Source of the DNA: Paramicrosporidium saccamoebae KSL3
Lineage: Eukaryota; Fungi; Cryptomycota
Assembly (NCBI GenBank): GCA_002794465.1
Contig: MTSL01000219.1
Coordinates: forward strand, 1-11,280
DNA length: 11,280 bases
Direction: 5' to 3'
Shown here: positions 1 through 10,546 of the stretch, one piece after another
How positions within the stretch are numbered: position 1 is the first letter of the stretch
How the letters are laid out: every line of letters starts with the position of its first letter
Translations under genes and position numbers: made by a program
The notes under the pieces: generated by a model
Seen by the model: only the letters and a program-made list of their open reading frames with translations
Database searches by the model: none
Told to the model about the DNA's origin: nothing

Positions 1-2213
1 AAGGAGAATGGCATTGTGCACTCGGTTGGAAACTATTCGCGCTGGGACCGACCAGTGGAAAGGACTAGCATCCTGGCGATCATCATTCTGACAATTGCCG
101 CCTTTGCCACTCGCTATTACCGCATCGAAAAGGGCGACTTTGTCGTGTACTGTCCCTCCAGTGTGTCTTATGACGTAGATGGGACGAGGCGCATTTCGGC
201 AAATTTGCCACCAAATATTTGAATCAGACGTTTTACTTTGATGTGCACCCGCCCCTTGGCAAAATGATGGTGGCACTGGCAGGCAAGATTGCCGGCTACG
301 ATGGCACATTTGACTTTACATCGGGAGGAGATTATGGCAACAAGGTGCCCTACGTGCCGATGAGGATGATGGTGGCCAGTTTTGGAACAATGGTTGTACC
401 TTTGACGTACATGGCGGCAATCCAGCTGCGTCTCACCCAAACCACGGCTCTTTTGATGGCATTCATGACCTTATTTGGTGAGAAGCGGGAACACAATATC
501 TGACAATGTAGAGAATGGACTGATTGGAATCACTCGTTTAATGTTATTGGACTCTATGCTAATTGGATTCACGGCAGCCACCTTTGCAGCCTATGCTTGG
601 TTCCGAAACCAAAGTGACCGTCCATTTGGCTTTAAATGGAAATTGAGTTTGATCCTAACGGGAGCGTCGATTGGATGTGTGTCTAGTGTCAAATGGGTTG
701 GCCTCTTCATTACCGCTCAGGTTGGATTACTGACGATTGAGGAATTGTGGCAAATGTTTGGCGATGCTAAACTTCCCAAAAAGATCTTTGCCCGACATTT
801 CGTGTCGCGGGTCTTTGGACTCATTGTAGTGCCGTTGGCCATCTACATGATCTCCTTTAAGGCGCATTTTACAGTGTTGAGCAAGAGCGGTTCTGGCGAC
901 GCCAACATGAGTTCATTATTCCAAGCTGGCCTCCTTGGAAATGATCTGTCCAGCTCTCCAGTCCAACTTGCGTATGGATCCTATGTCACTTTAAAGAGCA
1001 ACACGTATGGTGGTGGGTTATTGCATTCGCATGTGCAGACCTATCCGGCGGGAAGCAAACAGCAACAAGTGACCACTTATCACCATAAGGATCTGAACAA
1101 TGTGTGGATGATCATCCACACTTACAAGGTGCCTGCCCAAAACTACGATGAGATTGATCCCTTGCCCGTCAACAATGGCGACATTATTCGGCTGATGCAC
1201 AATGCCACTGGCCATTTCTTGCACAGTCACCAGGTCAAAGCGCACGTCAACGCAAATGACTTTGAAGTTTCGGGATATGGCGAGCTAAATCTTGAAGATC
1301 CCAACGATCTTTGGCAGGTGGAGATTGTAAAAGACACCCGGTCGGGCGAGCCCATCCTCCGTGCTCTTACCACCAAATTCCGTCTGAAGCATGTGCAAAC
1401 TGGCTGCTATCTCAAATCGCGGAACAACAAGCTGCCGGATTGGGGTTTCAACCAAGGAGAAGTGTCTTGTGATTATACGCCCGAGCTGAACGCAAAGTAT
1501 TTGCTGTGGAATGTGGAAACGCATGTCAATGACAAATGTACAGTCTTCATAAGATCGACTAATCATTAATAGTGCCCAAGGGCGATGTGACGCAATATCG
1601 CTCCAATTTCTGGGAGGACTTTAAGGACTGCAATGTGGGAATGTATATTACAAACAATGCGCTCGTGCCTGACTCCGAGCTGGAGCCGGGTACGCTGACC
1701 TCCAGTGCCTCGGAGTGGTTCTTTATGACTCGTGGCATCCGGCTGTGCTCCTGGGCCAACGATCGCATCAAGTTTTACATGTTAGGAAATCCTGCGGTCT
1801 GGTGGACCGGATCAGTTGCCATCATTGCCACCGGAGTGCTCCTGGGAGTCTATGCACTAATCCAGCAACGCAAGGCACATAACCTATTGCCTTCCAATTT
1901 GGATGCATTCCGATTCCGCGTGAAACTTGTCACTGGAAGTTGGGCGCTCACCTACTTTCCCTTCTTTATTATGGGCCGTGTATTGTACGTGCACCACTAC
2001 TATCCGGCGCTGATCTTTTCCACATTGAATGTGGGGCTGGTGCTGGATCATCTTATAGGAAAACGTCCTCAATGGCAGCAGCGAGCGGTCAAGTTGAGCA
2101 TGGCAATGATTGTTCTGGCAGTATTTGTGTATTTCTCGCCAATGTGCTATGGTATTGAGGGACCTGGAAAGGACTTCCGAGGACGTCGCTGGCTCAAGTC
2201 GTGGAATCTCTAA
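1..2213 (+). CDS. PMT2: Dolichyl-phosphate-mannose:protein O-mannosyltransferase, PMT2 subfamily (5' end upstream of window)
   Basis: Exons <1-146, 179-477, 512-1537, 1573-2213 join ORFs 16..222, 219..503, 475..1569 and 1572..2213 in frame (703 aa visible). Splicing restores VVWDEAHFGKF...DVHPPLGKM (DE motif, PMT2-type WDEAH), LFENGLI...LLDS, MIR-domain LHSHVQTYPAGSKQQQVT, HHYYPAL and C-terminal RWLKSW. Confidence 0.95.
147..178 (+). other. Spliceosomal intron, 32 nt (PMT2)
   Basis: GTACTG...CTTATGACGTAG; removal gives V-V-W-D-E-A-H. Confidence 0.93.
478..511 (+). other. Spliceosomal intron, 34 nt (PMT2)
   Basis: GTGAGA...CTGACAATGTAG; removal gives L-F-E-N-G. Confidence 0.92.
1538..1572 (+). 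other. Spliceosomal intron, 35 nt (PMT2)
   Basis: GTACAG...CTAATCATTAATAG; removal gives HVNDK-L-PKG in frame. Confidence 0.92.
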
Positions 2214-2780: not shown

Positions 2781-5700
2781 TTAAGAAGAGTTGCTTTCTC
2801 GGGAAGCTTCAGCTTCAGAGGGATCGCCTTCACGTAGAGGGACGGCGTTTTCAACTGCAAGGGAAACACCCTCAAGTGGAAAAGAGACATCGTCTTCAAG
2901 TGGTGGAGGACCATCGTCTTCAAGTGATGGAGGACCATCATCTTCAAGTGGTGGAGGAACGTCTTGAGTATTGCTCGGATCGTCGTTCAGTAGCTCAATG
3001 AGTGCTTCAACAGTCTCTCTAGCACCCTGCTCTGGCAATCTCAGTGTTGCAAAGCAGGTAGCACTCCCCACACTCGGATAGAAATCGACGCACTTTTTGC
3101 CGTGGCTAAGCGGATCGACCAGATCATCAGTACTTCCCGTTACATCACGCAGTCTTGCCGAAAACTGTCTCAAGAATGCCTCGTGTTCTTCGCCATCACG
3201 GATGACCACGGAGCTGGACTTTGCACACATCTGTTTGTTGGCATCACAACTGTCAAACGGGATGTGGTCGTTTGATGGTGCGTAAAACGATACTTTTGGT
3301 TTCACGAAATCCAAATCCGTCGAGGCAGCTCCTGTCCAGACAGCCACAAATTTGGACAGTTGCTTTGGAGTCAGACACTCCAAAAATGTCTTGAGGAATA
3401 ACTTGCGATCTACTGGGCCATACTCCGAATCGATATCCACTCCCTCTTCCACGTTAATCTTGGGAAACACTTCTTCGGCCGTCAGCAGAGTGCCGTTAAT
3501 CTTGGATGCAAGCATTTCAGAGAAGGGCTGCTTGTTTATCACAGGTGAATCTGGCATTTTGAGAAAATGATCCAACCCAAGTCGGAAGGATTCGACAAAG
3601 GTTTTAAATTCTTGTAAACACCTTTCACTGAACTGGTCAAAGAATTCTTCCATATTCTCATATTCAAATCCCGAGTATACTGCCTCACATTTTGCGTACC
3701 ACTCCTCAAGATCGAGCCCTTCGCGTGGGATTTCGTAAAGGTTGTAGTTAGTTTGACTCTCAAATCCATTGAATGTCAATTTGTCCAATGGAGCCCAACG
3801 AGCATCCTCTTTGTTACGGTTGAACCATGCCTTATTACGCGCTCTCTCCATTTCTTTGGGAGACTTGGCTTGGTTTTGCTCAAATTGTCCCATTTCCTCA
3901 GGTGTGGGCTCAAAATCATCGCCCATCACACGCTGATAGAGATTTTGATCCCTAAATATCGCCAATTCATGGGCATACGTCTCTTTGAAATAAGTTTCAA
4001 TTTCGTCCTCGCTTGCATTGAGGACGATTCCATAGAACTCGGGATCTATAGGAAAGGGAAGCTTCACATTTTGTTGCATTGCCTTTCCAGCTAGGAACCC
4101 AGCAGGAAATCCATCGTTTCCCTTGATCGGGAATTTGAATTTTACAACGGATGCATCCACGTCGCTCATGCTTGAAATCATGGTCGTCTTCATCATGTCC
4201 AGCAATTCTCCAAGCCAGGAACGGAGGGGGCCATCTCCATAAGTATCATCATGCGCAACGCTCGACTTTGGGTGTGCCAATATCCTGGGAACTGCTTTTA
4301 TCATTTGAAGGGACTGTGCCAGATCATATCTTTGTCCATTATGCGCCGTGATGAAATCCTCCGCCAGGTCGAATGAGGACCTGGTAATTTCTTTAAGCAA
4401 GACGCTCTTATTAGGTAACTCGTACAACAATGGTAAAATGTCGGCACCATCGAACAGAACATATAATGAAGTTATTCCAGAGTTATCTGAGGTTCGAGTA
4501 ATAATCCGAGCAAGCACATTAATACATTCAGTGTACTCAAAGCCAAGAGTTTCTCTGTTTCTAAAGCCGCAACACGTATTGAATGAGCGTTTTAAATTGC
4601 CTTGCCATGAATTTTTTATCAATTGCCCAGCTCGTCTTCGGAATGCAATCCACTCATTATGTTCCGGCGCCTTTTGCATTTCATCCATCTGGGAATCTGT
4701 AAGAACACCAAAGGTATCATCACTACAGTCCAAAATGTCGGCCGTCTTAATCTTGGTGAATGCACTAAGCTCCTTTGGGACCCTTTTAGACAAATGATGT
4801 ACTTGTTCAGAGCAAAGATCGGCCAGTCTGAGTTTAAAGTCACCAGCCGTGAATAATTGGAAAGCTTGTGGCCCGAGCTTCCTGGCAACATTGTTTGTGA
4901 TGTGTGAGCTTAATGCAAGGGCACATTCAGCGCCAATGGCTCCAAGAACGGAACTATTCAAATGTTCCAAGTGATCTAATGTCCCCTCAGTAATCTTCTC
5001 CGCCATCAGCTCACAAAATTTCTTGCGCAATTTGATCAACCAAAGGGTATTTTGTAGATCAAGGTAATTTTCGAGACTATCAGACTTCAGGTTGTTGATC
5101 CGTGTAATATGCGATTCCCAAACCGTTTTATCGTTCGATAGTTCTGGGACGTCATCTTTGTTATAACCGTCTGGGACTGAGATAAAAGAACGACACTTGT
5201 CACTGCAGCTATCGCGCAACCATAATTGGGTTTTGTAAGTCTCAATGCTCACGCTTTTACAATAATGGTCGGCATCCTCTACATCACGGCTAATGTGCTC
5301 GATAATCTCTGGTTTGTTCAAGGCAGCACTACTTTTGAGCATTGGTTCGAAAATTTTCATTTCATTTCCTCCACAACTGGCAAAAATATCGTCAGGTAAC
5401 TCGGATTCAGGTGACTCTAAAAGCATCTCGGCTACATCGGGACGTTCTCTTGCAATCTCTGCAAATCGTGCCTGTCCAATATCGGACAATGAGACACGAC
5501 GCATACGTTTTTTGTTTAGGTGGCTACAATCGGGCAAGAAAGTCAACAGTTTAGACAACTCTAATATTTTCTGATACACGCTGACCGGAAAAACCAAATA
5601 GTTCCTGGAAGGGACTTTTGGGAGATCCTCCTCAAGGTGGTTAGTCCATTCTTCAATTATCTCTGGACAGATTTTAGACCAGGTGTCCAATGACAAGTCT

Positions 5701-6287
5701 GATCTGACAAGACCACGAAAGCATTCCAGACTGATAGAATCAAGAAGGTTGGAATTGATCGAATAACTCTCCAGGTTTTCGCATAGAATCTTCTTGTCAA
5801 GCTTACTTCCAAATAATTTAAATTGCTTTGGGGTCATCCAGGAGGTATTTTTCATCGGGCCGTCGTAATATTCCAACAGATTTTCTGACAAGCCTGCACG
5901 ACTTTCTGAAGAGTCGCTGAAATTTTCAATATCTGCCACTTCTGCAAAGAATCTGGAAGATATGGTGGCACCGTTGGTAATCAAGATTTCGAGTTGTTCG
6001 ACGTTGATTCTACTGGCAAACTTGTCTGTGTCAGTTATGTCATAGACAATCTGATAGATAGCGACGACAGAGCAGTTCTTCAAGTTTTGGAAGAGCATCT
6101 CTATACCTTCGGGCGACGCATCTTCCAGGAACGCCGGACCACAACTGTCCCAGTTATCTTCAATCGTGCTCAATGCATCATTCTCTTTAGCGTTAAGCCT
6201 CTTAACCCAGTCCTTACAGTCGATGCCACCTGCCATACAGTACCGAAGCACCTGCAGGAGAATGTACAGTGACAGTATGGACAACAT
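2781..6287 (-). CDS. Putative secreted protein with C-terminal divergent HECT E3 ubiquitin ligase domain (1168 aa, intronless)
   Basis: The ORF-track start at 6314 is GTG; the first ATG is 6287, giving MLSILSLYILLQVLRYCMA|GG (signal-peptide-like). HECT landmarks occur in order: GDGPLRSWLGEL, GFLAGKAM...PFPIDPEFYGIVL, SFRLGLDHFL...SKING, FLECLTPKQLSKFVAVWTG, SATCFATLRLP (Cys codon at 3054-3056). ORF confidence is high; HECT call is from motif recall. Confidence 0.82.
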   Translation of the reverse strand: MLSILSLYILLQVLRYCMAGGIDCKDWVKRLNAKENDALSTIEDNWDSCGPAFLEDASPEGIEMLFQNLKNCSVVAIYQIVYDITDTDKFASRINVEQLEILITNGATISSRFFAEVADIENFSDSSESRAGLSENLLEYYDGPMKNTSWMTPKQFKLFGSKLDKKILCENLESYSINSNLLDSISLECFRGLVRSDLSLDTWSKICPEIIEEWTNHLEEDLPKVPSRNYLVFPVSVYQKILELSKLLTFLPDCSHLNKKRMRRVSLSDIGQARFAEIARERPDVAEMLLESPESELPDDIFASCGGNEMKIFEPMLKSSAALNKPEIIEHISRDVEDADHYCKSVSIETYKTQLWLRDSCSDKCRSFISVPDGYNKDDVPELSNDKTVWESHITRINNLKSDSLENYLDLQNTLWLIKLRKKFCELMAEKITEGTLDHLEHLNSSVLGAIGAECALALSSHITNNVARKLGPQAFQLFTAGDFKLRLADLCSEQVHHLSKRVPKELSAFTKIKTADILDCSDDTFGVLTDSQMDEMQKAPEHNEWIAFRRRAGQLIKNSWQGNLKRSFNTCCGFRNRETLGFEYTECINVLARIITRTSDNSGITSLYVLFDGADILPLLYELPNKSVLLKEITRSSFDLAEDFITAHNGQRYDLAQSLQMIKAVPRILAHPKSSVAHDDTYGDGPLRSWLGELLDMMKTTMISSMSDVDASVVKFKFPIKGNDGFPAGFLAGKAMQQNVKLPFPIDPEFYGIVLNASEDEIETYFKETYAHELAIFRDQNLYQRVMGDDFEPTPEEMGQFEQNQAKSPKEMERARNKAWFNRNKEDARWAPLDKLTFNGFESQTNYNLYEIPREGLDLEEWYAKCEAVYSGFEYENMEEFFDQFSERCLQEFKTFVESFRLGLDHFLKMPDSPVINKQPFSEMLASKINGTLLTAEEVFPKINVEEGVDIDSEYGPVDRKLFLKTFLECLTPKQLSKFVAVWTGAASTDLDFVKPKVSFYAPSNDHIPFDSCDANKQMCAKSSSVVIRDGEEHEAFLRQFSARLRDVTGSTDDLVDPLSHGKKCVDFYPSVGSATCFATLRLPEQGARETVEALIELLNDDPSNTQDVPPPLEDDGPPSLEDDGPPPLEDDVSFPLEGVSLAVENAVPLREGDPSEAEASRESNSS
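2888..2959 (-). repeat. 24-nt coding tandem repeat, three copies plus degenerate flanks, encoding PP(P/S)LEDD(G/V)
   Basis: CATCGTCTTCAAGTGGTGGAGGAC / CATCGTCTTCAAGTGATGGAGGAC / CATCATCTTCAAGTGGTGGAGGAA on + strand. Confidence 0.95.
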
Positions 6288-6733
6288 GATGTTGCTGATC
6301 CCTGGTCCCGACACTTTTATTAATGTCTTTAATTGGCTGAAGACATATAACCATCCAAGATGTAGTGTTTATCTTGTGACCGAGTGAGCAGACGCCTTTA
6401 GGTTGGGCAGGACTCTTTTGTTCGGACCAGACCTCTCATGGCCTGTAATTCCAGCGTAAGTGTGAGATGGTCTGTATATACACATCAGCGATCGAGGGTT
6501 CATACCAGTAGATCCGCAAAACTGGGCCCCTATTACCATGAGAGAGTATATAGCGAACCACTTGGTATTTGCTGCTATGATAATGGATCAAATGTCCCAC
6601 TATCTACTGCTGGCATCACAGAAATTAGTTTATTACGTAGTGATCACGCTTTAAACGGACAGGGGATTTATGGCCGTTCGGACCGACCGGGGATTGCGGT
6701 CCCCGCATTTTTCTTACCGCATCCCTTAGGAGC

Positions 6734-6746
6734 ACCCCCCCCCCTT
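6734..6746 (+). promoter_or_regulatory. A-C10-TT tract upstream of eIF4A start
   Basis: ACCCCCCCCCCTT ending 16 nt before ATG 6763; an identical 13-mer precedes the next gene. Confidence 0.5.
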
Positions 6747-6762
6747 TCCTCATCTATCCACC

Positions 6763-8068
6763 ATGGCGTACATATTGCAAGGAGAAGAAGGTCTAATGTG
6801 ATATAGTGCTCCTGAAGCTGCTGCGTTCCAAGATTTGCAGACCGAAGAGATTGTGGTACGTTATTTGGAAGCGAGGGATGTGACGTGTTTAGTCCAACTA
6901 TGACCAAGTTTTCGAGTCGTTTGACGACATGGGTTTGAAGCAGGAGCTCCTGCGCGGTATTTACGGCTACGGGTAAGCGAGAGGAATGGACTAAAGGTGT
7001 AGTTTCGAGCGTCCATCGGCCATCCAACAACGCGGCATTGTGCCCATCATTGGCGAACGCGACGTTATTGCGCAAGCCCAATCGGGAACCGGAAAGACGG
7101 CAACCTTTGCTATTGGTATTCTGCAAAAGATTGACCTGAGCAAGTTGGAAACACAGGCCCTGATCCTGGCCCCCACCCGCGAATTGGCTACGCAAATCCA
7201 GGGTGTGTTTTTGGCTATTGGAGAGCGCATGAACGTGCAGGTGCATGCATGTGTAGGTGGCACAGCCATTGCACAGGACATGCGTCGTCTGCAGGAAGGA
7301 GTACACGTGATTGTGGGTACCCCGGGACGAGTGTTTGACATGATCGACCGCAAAGTGCTGTCAACCGCATCAATTAAGATGTTCGCGCTGGACGAGGCGG
7401 ACGAAATGTTGAGCCGTGGCTTCAGCGAGCAGATCTACGAAGTGTTCCAGCGTCTGCCCCCGAATGTGCAGGTCATTCTGATTTCTGCGACCATGCCGAA
7501 GGAGGTTCTGGCGGTGACAAGCAACTTTATGCGCGATCCCATCCGCATCATGGTGAAGCGTGACGAGTTGACTTTGGAAGGTATTAAGCAGTTCTATATT
7601 GACGTTGGCGAGGAGACGCACAAGTTTGAAACGCTGTGTGATCTGTATGCGTCACTTAGCATTACGCAAGCCGTCATTTTCTGCAATACGCGTCGCAAGG
7701 TTGAGCAGCTCACCGAGTTCCTCATCCGCAAGGACTTTACCGTCTCTGCCCTCCACGGAGATATGCCCCAGGATGAGCGCAACCGCATCATGAAGGATTT
7801 CCGTGAGGGCAAATCCCGTGTCCTCATCACCACCGATCTCCTCGCCCGTGGAATTGACGTTCAGCAAGTGTCTGTTGTCATCAACTACGACTTCCCTCAG
7901 GAGAAGGAGAACTATCTCCATCGTATTGGACGTTCCGGTCGTTTTGGACGCAAAGGTGTTGCCATCAACTTTATCGTCGTCAATGACGTTCCCATGATGA
8001 AGGAGATTGAGCGTCACTACAGCACGCAAATCGAAGAGATGCCTGCCGACATTGCCAACCACATGTAA
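6763..8068 (+). CDS. TIF1: Translation initiation factor eIF4A (DEAD-box RNA helicase), 399 aa
   Basis: Exons 6763-6767, 6807-6855, 6893-6972, 7003-8068 (1200 nt). Q motif [65 protein letters not shown] matches eIF4A1/Tif1 rather than eIF4A3. Confidence 0.97.
6768..6806 (+). other. Spliceosomal intron, 39 nt, inside codon 2 of eIF4A
   Basis: ATG GC|GTACAT...CTAATGTGATATAG|T; in frame with downstream exons. Confidence 0.8.
6856..6892 (+). other. Spliceosomal intron, 37 nt (eIF4A)
   Basis: GTACGT...GTGACGTGTTTAG; joins EEIV to [13 protein letters not shown]. Confidence 0.88.
6973..7002 (+). other. Spliceosomal intron, 30 nt (eIF4A)
   Basis: GTAAGC...CTAAAGGTGTAG; restores GIYGYGFERPS. Confidence 0.95.
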
Positions 8069-8313
8069 GCGGCATAGTTACTGTCAGTTCGTTTCATAAA
8101 CTAAACCTATATCATTTATGTGTGTGTGTAATGTGAGTGGTGTGAAGAATGGGGAGAATGTGATAAAGGCGGAGAATGGAGAGGATGGGGAGGACAGTCT
8201 CAACGTGCCAAAGTATCAGAGCATATCATCGCATCTACAGACTAGATATATTGAGAGTCTTTACTTCTAATCTAACTCCATATTCATATAATCCAATTTA
8301 ACAAATATTCTCT

Positions 8314-8326
8314 ACCCCCCCCCCTT
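8314..8326 (+). promoter_or_regulatory. A-C10-TT tract immediately upstream of the J-protein start
   Basis: ACCCCCCCCCCTT directly abutting ATG 8327. Confidence 0.5.
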
Positions 8327-8692
8327 ATGGCCAGCTATTATGAAATACTGGGATTGACAGAGCAGGCGACTGTATTCAGAGATCCTTCTGACTGGTTGTA
8401 GGTTGAGGAGATAGTCAAAGCGTATCGGCGCAAGTGTCTAGAACACCATCCCGACCGCACACCCCTCCATCCTGAGCTCTTCCCCGTCATCCAGTCAGCC
8501 TACGGCGTGCTCGTCGATCCCCAGAGTAGGGCGAGCTATGACCGGTGGCTTCATTCTGGACTGGATGTTCCCTACGATGTGTGGCGCACAAGAGACGCCG
8601 TAGCGCATTGGACTACGGAAAGGCCCGCAATGAAGAACATGGACATGGACCCTGAAGAAGAACGACGCAAATTTCGTGACTATCAAGTGTGA
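8327..8692 (+). CDS. DNAJC12: Small class C J-domain co-chaperone, DNAJC12/JDP1-like, 111 aa
   Basis: Exons 8327-8371 and 8402-8692: MASYYEILGLTEQATVEEIVKAYRRKCLEHHPDR (HPD intact)...ASYDRWLHSGLDVPYDVW...HW...RRKFRDYQV*. The post-J and terminal motifs resemble DNAJC12 as recalled (YDHWRRSQMSMPFQQW...HW...RKFRNYEI*). J-domain is certain; orthology is moderately supported. Confidence 0.8.
8372..8401 (+). other. Spliceosomal intron, 30 nt (J-protein)
   Basis: GTATTC...CTGACTGGTTGTAG, phase 0; removal restores the J-domain helix I-II junction. Confidence 0.9.
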
Positions 8693-8795: not shown

Positions 8796-10546
8796 CTATG
8801 ATTTATATGCAAAGAAGAGTGTTTTGTAAGTAGCATAAGGTGAAGAGCCTGCTTCGTCCTCCGTTGTAGATAATGTCCTTTCTTGCCCCTGTATAGTGGA
8901 TAATGATCCCTCTCGGCCTTGTATAGTGGATAACGATCCTTCTTGGCCTTGTATAGTAGTGGATGATGCTCCCCCTTGACTTTGTATAGTCGATACTGAT
9001 CCCTCCTGAACTCGCATAGTGGACAATGACTCTAATTGCCTTAGATCCAGTAGGGTGGAGAGACAGCGCCAACGATGTTCCATGCGACAATCTTCGTAGA
9101 CCGGAATTACAGTGCGACTGGCCTGGACACGAGTGATTGTCAGCTGGTGTGTTGCAAATTCGTGTAGCTCTGCGTGCCAATCGCGACAGAGACGAGCAAT
9201 TATAAAGTGTGCCTCCGGCTCCTCATAGGACTCGTACAGTTCCAGATGGAATCCAATGATCACGAACCAAACGGCAAATAAATTCATAATCCTCTTCAGA
9301 CGATTGCTGTTACCGCTCTAATCAATTAGAAAGAGACTCTTGCAGTACCTGGTGCATTGCAGCAAGCAATTTGGGAATCAGTCGACGCTGGCGTGGGATG
9401 GAATTGCATGCCACTTGAAGACAATCAAAGAGTAGTTGGCCCGCAGTAAAATCTTCTTCTGCGATCGTCTGTAACGCAAACTTGGACACGGGAATTGATC
9501 CATAGATGGTTTCTCCACTCAGCAGGATTGCAAAGGTAAAGGATCGTTTGATGGCCGGTAGACCTCCCTCCAAAGTCGATGACACGAGCAGTTTGGAGAG
9601 GATCGTGGAAAATGATGGCTTCATGGCGAGTGCTGCGAATATGTCATACATCTCGCCGACAAACAGTGTCCACCGCTCATTGCATTCGTTAGGATTTTGG
9701 AGGGGAATACTTCGACGGACACACCCTGATGCAAACATGTTGGAGAGTAGCGGATTAATAAACATTTCCTCCTCAGTCAATGGTTCCACAGTAGAAAAGG
9801 GTAACGAGTCCAACTCGGCAAATAGTTCCATCATCTGTGGGTAGTCCAAATCGGCCGACCTCACCAGTCGCAGAAATTTGAGCCAATTCGACACTCGCTT
9901 ACATTCAACCCACACTCCGAATCCATAGCGGTTCCTTACGTCGTTTTGATGCATGGAAAACCATTGTAGCGACACTTCCCCCAATGGGTCACGTCGTCCG
10001 TCCACCAACGAATATAACGACGGGAGAAACTCGTCATTCCGCGCCACATGCACTTGGGCCATCACATCAGCAAGTAAGAGACAGCACCGGAGACTTGTTG
10101 ACACCAACCAGCCAAGTACTGGCGACCGGAGTGCATCAATGCGCTGGATAGCCAGGCAGGTTAGCAGTGTATCGGCCGCTGAGGCGCCAGTCATCCAGGT
10201 TGTCATGAGCATGCGTAGACGACACACAAAGCCAAGTATTGTGGTCGGTGAGAGGGTGGCAGCTGCCACTGTGGATGTTGGGAGTACATTTTCCAGAATA
10301 TACTGACGATATGCTGCCAATGTCATGCCATTAACCCGCACCAGGCCGCGATCCATTTTGGGATGCATAAGCTATGCGCATTAGTCACATCGGGACAGGT
10401 ACGTCAATGCTGGAGACGGCCTCCACCAGATCATAATTTGGCGCCAGCTGCACTACGTCGCTGGGAACGGTGGTGGGAAAGACGGCGGAAAGGAACTCGT
10501 CGGTAATGTCAAAAAATGTGGGGTGCTGGTAGTCGTATTCGCTCAT
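8796..10546 (-). CDS. MAK10: NatC N-terminal acetyltransferase auxiliary subunit NAA35/Mak10, 562 aa, with repetitive C-terminus
   Basis: Exons 10546-10403, 10371-9349, 9317-8796 join ORFs 9322..10368 and 8796..9287. Motifs DITDEF...LVEAVSSIDLMHPKMDRG, TWMTGASAADTLLTCL, PRQRR, GFHLELY and MEHRW match recalled Mak10/NAA35 motifs in order. Confidence 0.88.
8851..9033 (-). repeat. 30-nt coding minisatellite, about six units (one of 33 nt), consensus EGSLSTIQGQ
   Basis: + strand units start at 8851, 8881, 8911, 8941 (33 nt), 8974 and 9004; core TGTATAGTGGATAA(T/C)GATCC. Confidence 0.93.
9318..9348 (-). other. Spliceosomal intron, 31 nt (NAA35)
   Basis: GTACTG...CTAATTGATTAG on minus strand, phase 0. 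Confidence 0.88.
10372..10402 (-). other. Spliceosomal intron, 31 nt (NAA35)
   Basis: GTACCT...CTAATGCGCATAG on minus strand; restores SSID-LMHPKMD. Confidence 0.92.

Follow-up and report, generated by a model that had tools for sequence, protein, structure and literature searches.

What is known of HECT-type ubiquitin ligases that act outside the cell that makes them? To our knowledge, HECT ligases are cytosolic or nuclear enzymes, and the HECT-type ligases that pathogens deliver have so far been bacterial look-alikes. SopA of Salmonella and NleL of enterohaemorrhagic Escherichia coli (EHEC) are cysteine-dependent E3 ligases that are made by the pathogen and delivered into host cells, where they use host E2~ubiquitin. 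Here we analyze a window of 11,280 nucleotides from the Paramicrosporidium saccamoebae genome (positions 1 to 11,280 of contig MTSL01000219.1, assembly GCA_002794465.1; all coordinates below are positions in this window), and in it a minus-strand gene whose product joins a predicted N-terminal signal peptide and a helical solenoid to a C-terminal HECT-like module. On balance, we favor the view that this gene encodes a soluble, secreted HECT-type ubiquitin ligase that is exported to the host and tags host proteins. P. saccamoebae lives as a parasite within the nucleus of the amoeba Saccamoeba (Quandt et al. 2017, PMC5701793), in keeping with the eukaryotic parasite origin that had been proposed in an earlier reading of the bare sequence, referred to below as the original prediction.

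Among eukaryotic parasites, Microsporidia equip enzymes that are otherwise cytosolic, hexokinase for example, with signal peptides, and they carry expanded, signal-bearing, host-exposed families with leucine-rich repeat (LRR) and RING domains (NemLGF) (PMC5423893, PMC6460350). These families resemble the one described here in that they come from a related parasite clade (a sister group), in that a signal peptide is placed on a normally intracellular type of enzyme, and in that they are lineage-specific, paralogous, often tandem and fast-diverging. They differ in two respects: the present family contains a HECT ligase, which is not reported in those two papers, and host exposure was shown experimentally for the Nematocida proteins, whereas here it is proposed. 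No sequence kinship between the families was found, and the profile search with our family gave Paramicrosporidium-clade proteins alone wherever the source was named. Similarly, Trichinella spiralis is a eukaryotic parasite that secretes an E3 ligase, Ts-RNF, acting on host proteins (PMC10877949), but Ts-RNF is an adaptor-type RING ligase and not a thioester-forming HECT enzyme, and it is unrelated in sequence and architecture. Our searches of the full-text literature turned up neither an account of a eukaryotic parasite whose HECT ligases are secreted or bear a signal peptide nor a relevant paper on Paramicrosporidium and HECT. In papers on oomycetes, chytrids and apicomplexans, HECT mentions concern ordinary or merely expanded genes with no signal-peptide fusions, and the P. 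saccamoebae genome paper (PMC5701793) makes no mention of ubiquitin, secretion or effectors.

Does the C-terminal module have a HECT fold? Residues 729–988 match positions 43–242 of the Pfam HECT profile (PF00632), and weak matches to this profile are found in seven of 34 family members, the best of them scoring 22.6 bits. When a profile of the 34 family members was searched against the sequences of the Protein Data Bank (PDB), it matched the HECT domain of AREL1 (E 0.0046) and that of TOM1; the AREL1 match consists of four collinear motif matches, the last of which falls on the catalytic Cys motif. An AlphaFold2 (AF2) model of residues 565–1112, built with the family alignment, has a predicted local distance difference test score (pLDDT) of 88.1 and a predicted template modeling score (pTM) of 0.89. 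Foldseek comparison of this model with the PDB gave 51 matches at E ≤1e-3, and the best 50 of the 51 are all eukaryotic HECT ligases with a probability of 1.00; UBR5, HUWE1, Tom1, Smurf1/2, HECTD3, E6AP, the NEDD4 family, AREL1, WWP1 and HACE1 are among the matches listed. The target-normalized template modeling (TM) score against solved HECT domains reaches 0.57, at an identity of ~11%. This moderate score fits a domain of two lobes that are joined by a flexible hinge, with ~95 residues inserted in the N-lobe. We regard the structural test as decisive, and the predicted bilobed HECT fold, very divergent as it is, is well supported.

The putative active site leads to the same assignment. The segment SATCFATLRLP (residues 1075–1085, window 3033–3065) contains Cys1078, which is Cys in 28 of the 31 aligned family members at a pairwise identity of ~20% and which corresponds in the alignment to the Cys of the C-lobe motif in AREL1. 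Its Ser/Thr neighbor is also conserved across the family, and Cys1078 is the only widely conserved Cys of the catalytic module, lying 31 residues before the conserved domain end. The original prediction had read HECT N-lobe and C-lobe motifs in order, with the catalytic Cys retained, and had suggested AlphaFold and Foldseek as a check; the collinear AREL1 motifs and the conservation of Cys1078 bear out the reading, and the check returned a HECT fold. By its predicted fold and catalytic Cys, the protein is a member of the eukaryotic HECT superfamily, in which it forms a very divergent branch below the Pfam threshold. It is a case of a catalytic domain that was missed by sequence models and recovered by structure prediction.

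How does this protein compare with the HECT ligases already described? With the eukaryotic enzymes (UBR5, HUWE1/Tom1, E6AP, NEDD4/Smurf, AREL1, HECTD3) it shares the predicted bilobed fold, the collinear lobe motifs and the position of the Cys ~31 residues before the domain end, and it has a large helical-repeat region ahead of the C-terminal HECT domain, an arrangement common to many HECT ligases. Unlike them, it falls under the Pfam threshold at ~11% identity, has the ~95-residue N-lobe insertion and a 59-residue tail, and carries a signal peptide and a disulfide-type exoplasmic domain. The likeness to SopA and NleL, which had been drawn in the original prediction, holds as a functional analogy, that of a pathogen's Cys-dependent E3 ligase that would act in the host, but not as structural or sequence kinship. 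Neither these two nor any other bacterial HECT-like protein is found among the best 50 of the 51 Foldseek matches in the PDB or in the HMMER searches of the PDB. Moreover, SopA and NleL are delivered by type III injection, whereas here a Sec-type signal peptide and exocytosis would deliver the protein, and their N-terminal domain is beta-helical whereas the one described here is an alpha-solenoid.

The extreme divergence from canonical HECTs would also be expected of an inactive HECT-fold pseudo-enzyme that is exported to the host and sequesters host E2 enzymes, ubiquitin or other proteins. The window paralogue in particular invites this explanation, since its C-lobe is followed by an odd, acidic and proline-containing tail. 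Within the tail, a 24-nt unit is repeated three times at 2888–2958 (Tandem Repeats Finder score 128, 93% matches) and encodes Pro/Asp/Glu-rich repeats of eight residues. The tail may be a recent expansion. Relatives end ~6–12 residues past the conserved end of the C-lobe, and only the window paralogue continues beyond it. We nonetheless consider a pseudo-enzyme improbable, given that Cys1078 and its Ser/Thr neighbor are conserved across the family and that the tail is absent from the other paralogues and relatives, and we continue to favor an active, secreted ligase.

What would bring such an enzyme into the secretory pathway? Along the 1168-residue protein, Kyte-Doolittle windows of 19 residues reach 1.6 or more solely at positions 1 and 4; elsewhere the highest value is 1.25. 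Both statements of the original prediction on this point therefore stand, namely that a hydrophobic, signal-peptide-like segment follows the first ATG and that no other obvious transmembrane segment is present. The hydrophobic core and the Cys-x-Ala site are common to three P. saccamoebae paralogues (P0002, P0003 and P0004). The signal was tested family-wide, as a strongly hydrophobic window of 11 residues within the first 35, in the 48 members that start with Met and have at least 700 residues. Such a segment is found in 35 of them, versus 4.9% of 1357 internal control windows. In most of the remaining 13, the N-terminus is signal-like in a milder form, or an internal Met is followed at once by a textbook signal, the latter suggesting over-extended gene calls in some relatives; two lack any such segment. 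Entry of the protein into the parasite endoplasmic reticulum (ER) by way of this predicted signal peptide is well supported.

The N-terminus of the window protein also has features that could be read differently. No Lys or Arg precedes its hydrophobic core, and an Arg directly follows it. By the positive-inside rule, this arrangement could favor a cytosolic C-terminus. The segment would then be an uncleaved anchor, the HECT domain would face the parasite's own cytosol, and the protein would be a housekeeping E3 ligase tethered to the ER or an organelle; the difficulty that the ER lumen contains no ubiquitin would disappear. However, a core of only ~13–14 residues would make a short membrane span, a conserved cleavage-type site with small residues comes next, and textbook signal peptides with basic n-regions are found in distant relatives. 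Furthermore, the adjoining domain contains covarying Cys pairs and is the ectodomain of type-I or GPI-like (glycosylphosphatidylinositol-like) relatives, which fixes it on the exoplasmic side. Taking these points together, we judge a cytosol-facing anchor very improbable and retain the signal peptide. Replacement of the N-terminus by an upstream exon is similarly unlikely. The original prediction had pointed to RNA-seq as the place where such an exon might appear; on the evidence of the genomic sequence, the 150 bp to the divergent helicase gene leave little room, and the N-terminus is conserved in the paralogues.

The second argument for secretion is provided by the domain that follows the signal peptide. 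The AF2 model of residues 20–570 has a pLDDT of 91.4 and is all-helical, with many short helices and no strands. Foldseek gave generic helical-repeat matches alone (importins, designed armadillo proteins, condensin), all at E 5e-3 or worse and with TM scores ≤0.23, and an ARM/HEAT identity was consequently not assigned. A BspA-type LRR identity (LRR_5), suggested by a weak match in one relative (P0033), was rejected because the model is all-helical without strands. A Pfam scan gave nothing for the N-terminal 680 residues at E values up to 1. The original prediction had described ~620 residues of unrecognizable sequence. This was accurate insofar as the region has no Pfam match and no specific structural relative, but the region is not featureless: it is confidently modeled as a conserved helical solenoid domain, a new one without a specific known structural relative.

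The Cys residues of this region are informative. Counted over aligned family sequences at ~20% identity, Cys24/Cys49 are both present in 7 sequences and both absent from 16, and in no sequence is one found without the other. Likewise, Cys169/Cys189 occur together in 26 (neither in one, a single Cys in one) and Cys343/Cys365 in 29 (neither in one, a single Cys in one). Cys425/Cys455 mostly co-occur (both in 18, neither in three, a single Cys in six), and for Cys572/Cys588 the counts are both in nine, neither in 10 and a single Cys in two. Cys pairs that are gained and lost together across the family show the pattern expected of disulfide bonds, and we infer that the solenoid folds with several of them.

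Family architecture places the solenoid on the same side of the membrane. In ~14 relatives of ~750–850 residues, a signal peptide is followed by the same solenoid domain and then by either one C-terminal transmembrane segment with a short tail of basic residues or a hydrophobic, GPI-like terminus. Since the solenoid lies between the signal peptide and the C-terminal anchor in these relatives, it must there be an ectodomain. The HECT-bearing members have no membrane segment besides the signal. No family member ends in an ER-retention motif of the KDEL/HDEL type, and residence of the protein in the ER was rejected for this reason. Three independent observations, the covarying Cys pairs, the anchored ectodomain relatives and the lack of retention motifs, together indicate that the N-terminal domain, and hence the anchor-less protein, is exoplasmic, and its predicted passage through the secretory pathway is well supported.

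Passage through the secretory pathway does not by itself place the protein where ubiquitin is. The main rival to our proposal accepts export but holds that the protein acts on the surface or in the spore wall of the parasite, or else in an extracellular or phagosomal milieu without E1, E2, ATP or ubiquitin, so that the HECT-like module would serve a purpose other than ubiquitin transfer, as a binding scaffold or in some other Cys chemistry. The covarying Cys pairs suggest that the protein is built for oxidizing surroundings, the solenoid is a surface ectodomain in the transmembrane and GPI-anchored relatives, some solenoids are fused to hydrolases with the annotation 'Proteinase (Secreted protein)', which can act extracellularly, and the similarity to solved HECTs is very low at ~11% identity. 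All of this would fit such a role. On the other hand, the complete bilobed HECT architecture is kept rather than a fragment of it, a single free Cys is found at the catalytic position in 28 of 31 members in spite of ~20% pairwise identity, and the other HECT motifs are kept too. Without thioester chemistry, such conservation would be difficult to account for, and the HECT-bearing members have no anchor of any kind. We therefore regard a surface or extracellular role as unlikely and prefer ligase activity in the host.

We propose that the protein would act as follows. First, the signal peptide directs it into the parasite ER, the step that is well supported. Second, the helical solenoid would fold there with several disulfide bonds, as the covarying Cys pairs suggest. 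Third, with neither a membrane anchor nor an ER-retention signal, the protein would be exported from the naked intranuclear parasite into the host compartment, presumably the Saccamoeba nucleoplasm. Fourth, the solenoid would bind one or more host proteins and thereby select the targets. Fifth, the HECT module would take ubiquitin from a host E2 on Cys1078 and pass it to the bound target, whose stability or function would change in the parasite's favor. Action in the host nucleus, the use of host E1 and E2 and the identity of the targets are the inferred elements of this scheme. Rozellomycota grow inside their hosts as naked protoplasts (PMC5701793), and their intracellular meronts are unwalled (PMC6282948). 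Given naked intranuclear growth, ordinary exocytosis would put a soluble protein into host nucleoplasm that contains E1, E2 and ubiquitin. The paradox raised in the original prediction, that of a ligase in an ER lumen without ubiquitin, would thereby be removed with no dedicated translocation step, and no special delivery step may be needed.

Several points weigh against this proposal. First, the Pfam HECT match, which had been put forward as a check, lies in the direction of HECT but below the curated cut-off of 23.9 bits, the full-length protein scoring 17.2 bits and the isolated domain 20.5 bits (E 4e-4), and a phmmer search of the whole protein against the PDB sequences gave no match. Second, disulfide-rich domains are more typical of oxidizing, extracellular proteins than of proteins working in reducing nucleoplasm. 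Third, the n-region of the window protein lacks a basic residue. Fourth, the extreme C-terminus of known HECT ligases is close to the active site, and the activity of the window protein could therefore be altered by its tail. Finally, we found no text in the literature on whether a host membrane surrounds the intranuclear stages.

The window gene is one of a family. A profile search of 1.84 billion representative proteins gave 69 relatives; the census was made on representatives clustered at 50% identity, and its counts are lower bounds. P. saccamoebae has at least six genes that combine a signal peptide with a HECT-like module: the window gene, PSACC_03195 and PSACC_03196 (on one contig), PSACC_02888, and PSACC_02458 and PSACC_02459 (on one contig). 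The genome-wide count of such paralogues, which had been suggested in the original prediction, thus shows that the window gene is not unique. UniRef labels the paralogues 'HECT domain-containing', and the domain had thus already been seen by automated annotation. The close paralogues PSACC_03196, PSACC_03195 and PSACC_02888 are 53–55% identical to the window protein over the whole length and 56–62% in the C-terminal part. By region, identity is 60–66% in the catalytic module versus 48–50% in the solenoid, and it is lowest (42–43%) in residues 561–680. The greater conservation of the catalytic module is compatible with an enzyme part that stays fixed while the binding part attached to it diversifies.

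The solenoid itself is mobile. Four close paralogues and environmental proteins of ~1300 residues combine it with HECT, and in other proteins it stands alone with a membrane anchor; a sub-unit of it (approximately residues 105–250) is present three times in HECT proteins of ~980 residues. In the P. saccamoebae proteins PJF19829.1, PJF18592.1 and PSACC_03163 (P0028, P0031 and P0040), one or, in some cases, two copies of the solenoid are joined to alpha/beta-hydrolase or PGAP1-like lipase domains. The solenoid-hydrolase fusions have 1374–1964 residues, bear signals and carry the secreted-proteinase annotation mentioned above, and they suggest a modular family of exported enzymes.

Tandem pairs of genes with signal peptide and HECT-like module are also found on two environmental contigs of gene-dense eukaryotic DNA, which come from uncultured Paramicrosporidium-like genomes, at 5916–13105 of L005 (from the Joint Genome Institute (JGI) metagenomes 3300036987 and 3300037657) and at 2–8156 of L002. 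Beside the L005 pair lies a gene for an oxysterol-binding protein whose best match is in P. saccamoebae (56% identity); among named organisms, Rozella follows at 37%. The P. saccamoebae orthologue of this oxysterol-binding protein is a candidate for the same 33,909 bp contig as PJF18592.1, a hint of conserved synteny. With this neighbor gene nearest to P. saccamoebae, the family looks restricted to Paramicrosporidium and its uncultured relatives, as far as sources have been traced. We also rejected a host or contaminant origin of the window gene, since its contig belongs to the P. saccamoebae assembly and since the housekeeping gene that adjoins an environmental family member has its best match in this species too.

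The features of the gene are collected in Table 1. The open reading frame (ORF) extends over 2781–6314 on the minus strand and is a single frame of 1177 codons with no stops or frameshifts; its first ATG, at 6287, comes after an in-frame stop at 6369–6371 and gives the 1168-residue protein.

Table 1. Positions of the HECT-like gene, the parts of its predicted product and the adjoining intergenic region in the window.
Feature	Window position	Strand	Basis or remark
Complete single-exon coding sequence of the signal-peptide-bearing HECT-like protein	2781..6287	-	1168 codons plus stop; equals the public gene model exactly
Predicted signal peptide, residues 1-19	6231..6287	-	Hydrophobic core of ~13 residues, then Cys-x-Ala at -3/-1
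Cys-paired all-alpha solenoid, presumed target-binding module, residues ~22-560	4608..6224	-	AF2 model, Cys pairs, homologous ectodomains
Junction of solenoid and catalytic module, residues ~561-599, with Cys572/Cys588	4491..4607	-	Lower pLDDT at both model edges
HECT-like catalytic module, residues ~600-1109	2961..4490	-	N-lobe with ~95-residue insertion at ~785-880, then C-lobe
Codon of Cys1078, predicted catalytic (thioester) Cys	3054..3056	-	Conservation, AREL1 alignment
Paralogue-specific Pro/Asp/Glu-rich tail, 59 residues, 1110-1168	2784..2960	-	Translation; follows C-lobe
Divergent intergenic (promoter) region	6288..6437		150 bp, from the HECT-like gene to the start of the DEAD-box helicase gene at 6438 (+)

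The neighbors of the gene are ordinary housekeeping genes: a protein O-mannosyltransferase (PMT) at 1–2213 (+), an eIF4A-like DEAD-box helicase from 6438 (+) and a weakly Mak10-like gene. The O-mannosyltransferase gene has PMT, MIR and PMT_4TMC domains and a frame change at ~1569/1572. Its public model, of 667 residues over 2213 nt, implies one or more short introns, and the P. saccamoebae genome thus has introns, though the HECT-like gene has none. The public model at 6438–8692 (+) has Pfam matches to DEAD, Helicase_C and DnaJ; the eIF4A-like frame ends at 8068 and a separate J-domain-like ORF occupies 8507–8692, and this model probably merges two genes. In the ORF at 8796–9287 (-), an imperfect 30-nt tandem repeat of ~5 copies at 8869–9029 encodes Ser/Thr/Gln/Gly-rich decapeptide repeats; it lies in the C-terminal part of a gene with a weak match to Mak10 (a NatC subunit) farther upstream. 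Finally, the convergent intergenic region at 2214–2780 has a strong skew of G over C (+0.32 in 2001–2500) and contains an imperfect direct repeat of ~35 nt near 2385–2455.

The observations on fold, topology and family size suggest that a HECT ligase, attached to a new ectodomain, was drawn into the secretory pathway and multiplied in a parasite genome of 3750 genes. More tentatively, and with considerable doubt, we put forward a wider proposal. The Cys-paired solenoid could be a lineage-specific, reusable extracellular module with swappable ends (HECT, alpha/beta-hydrolase or PGAP1-like lipase, membrane or GPI anchor), and together its bearers could form a modular host-interaction system of early-diverging fungi with a logic like that of bacterial polymorphic effectors. 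Its HECT members could then represent the first case of genuine eukaryotic HECT ligases that a eukaryotic parasite exports into the nucleus of another eukaryote. If secretion and ligase activity are both as we propose, a eukaryotic parasite would be sending ubiquitin-ligase machinery of its own into the host nucleus. In a field where essentially nothing molecular is known, the family would then offer specific candidate proteins by which Rozellomycota and early microsporidia-like parasites could control their amoebae.

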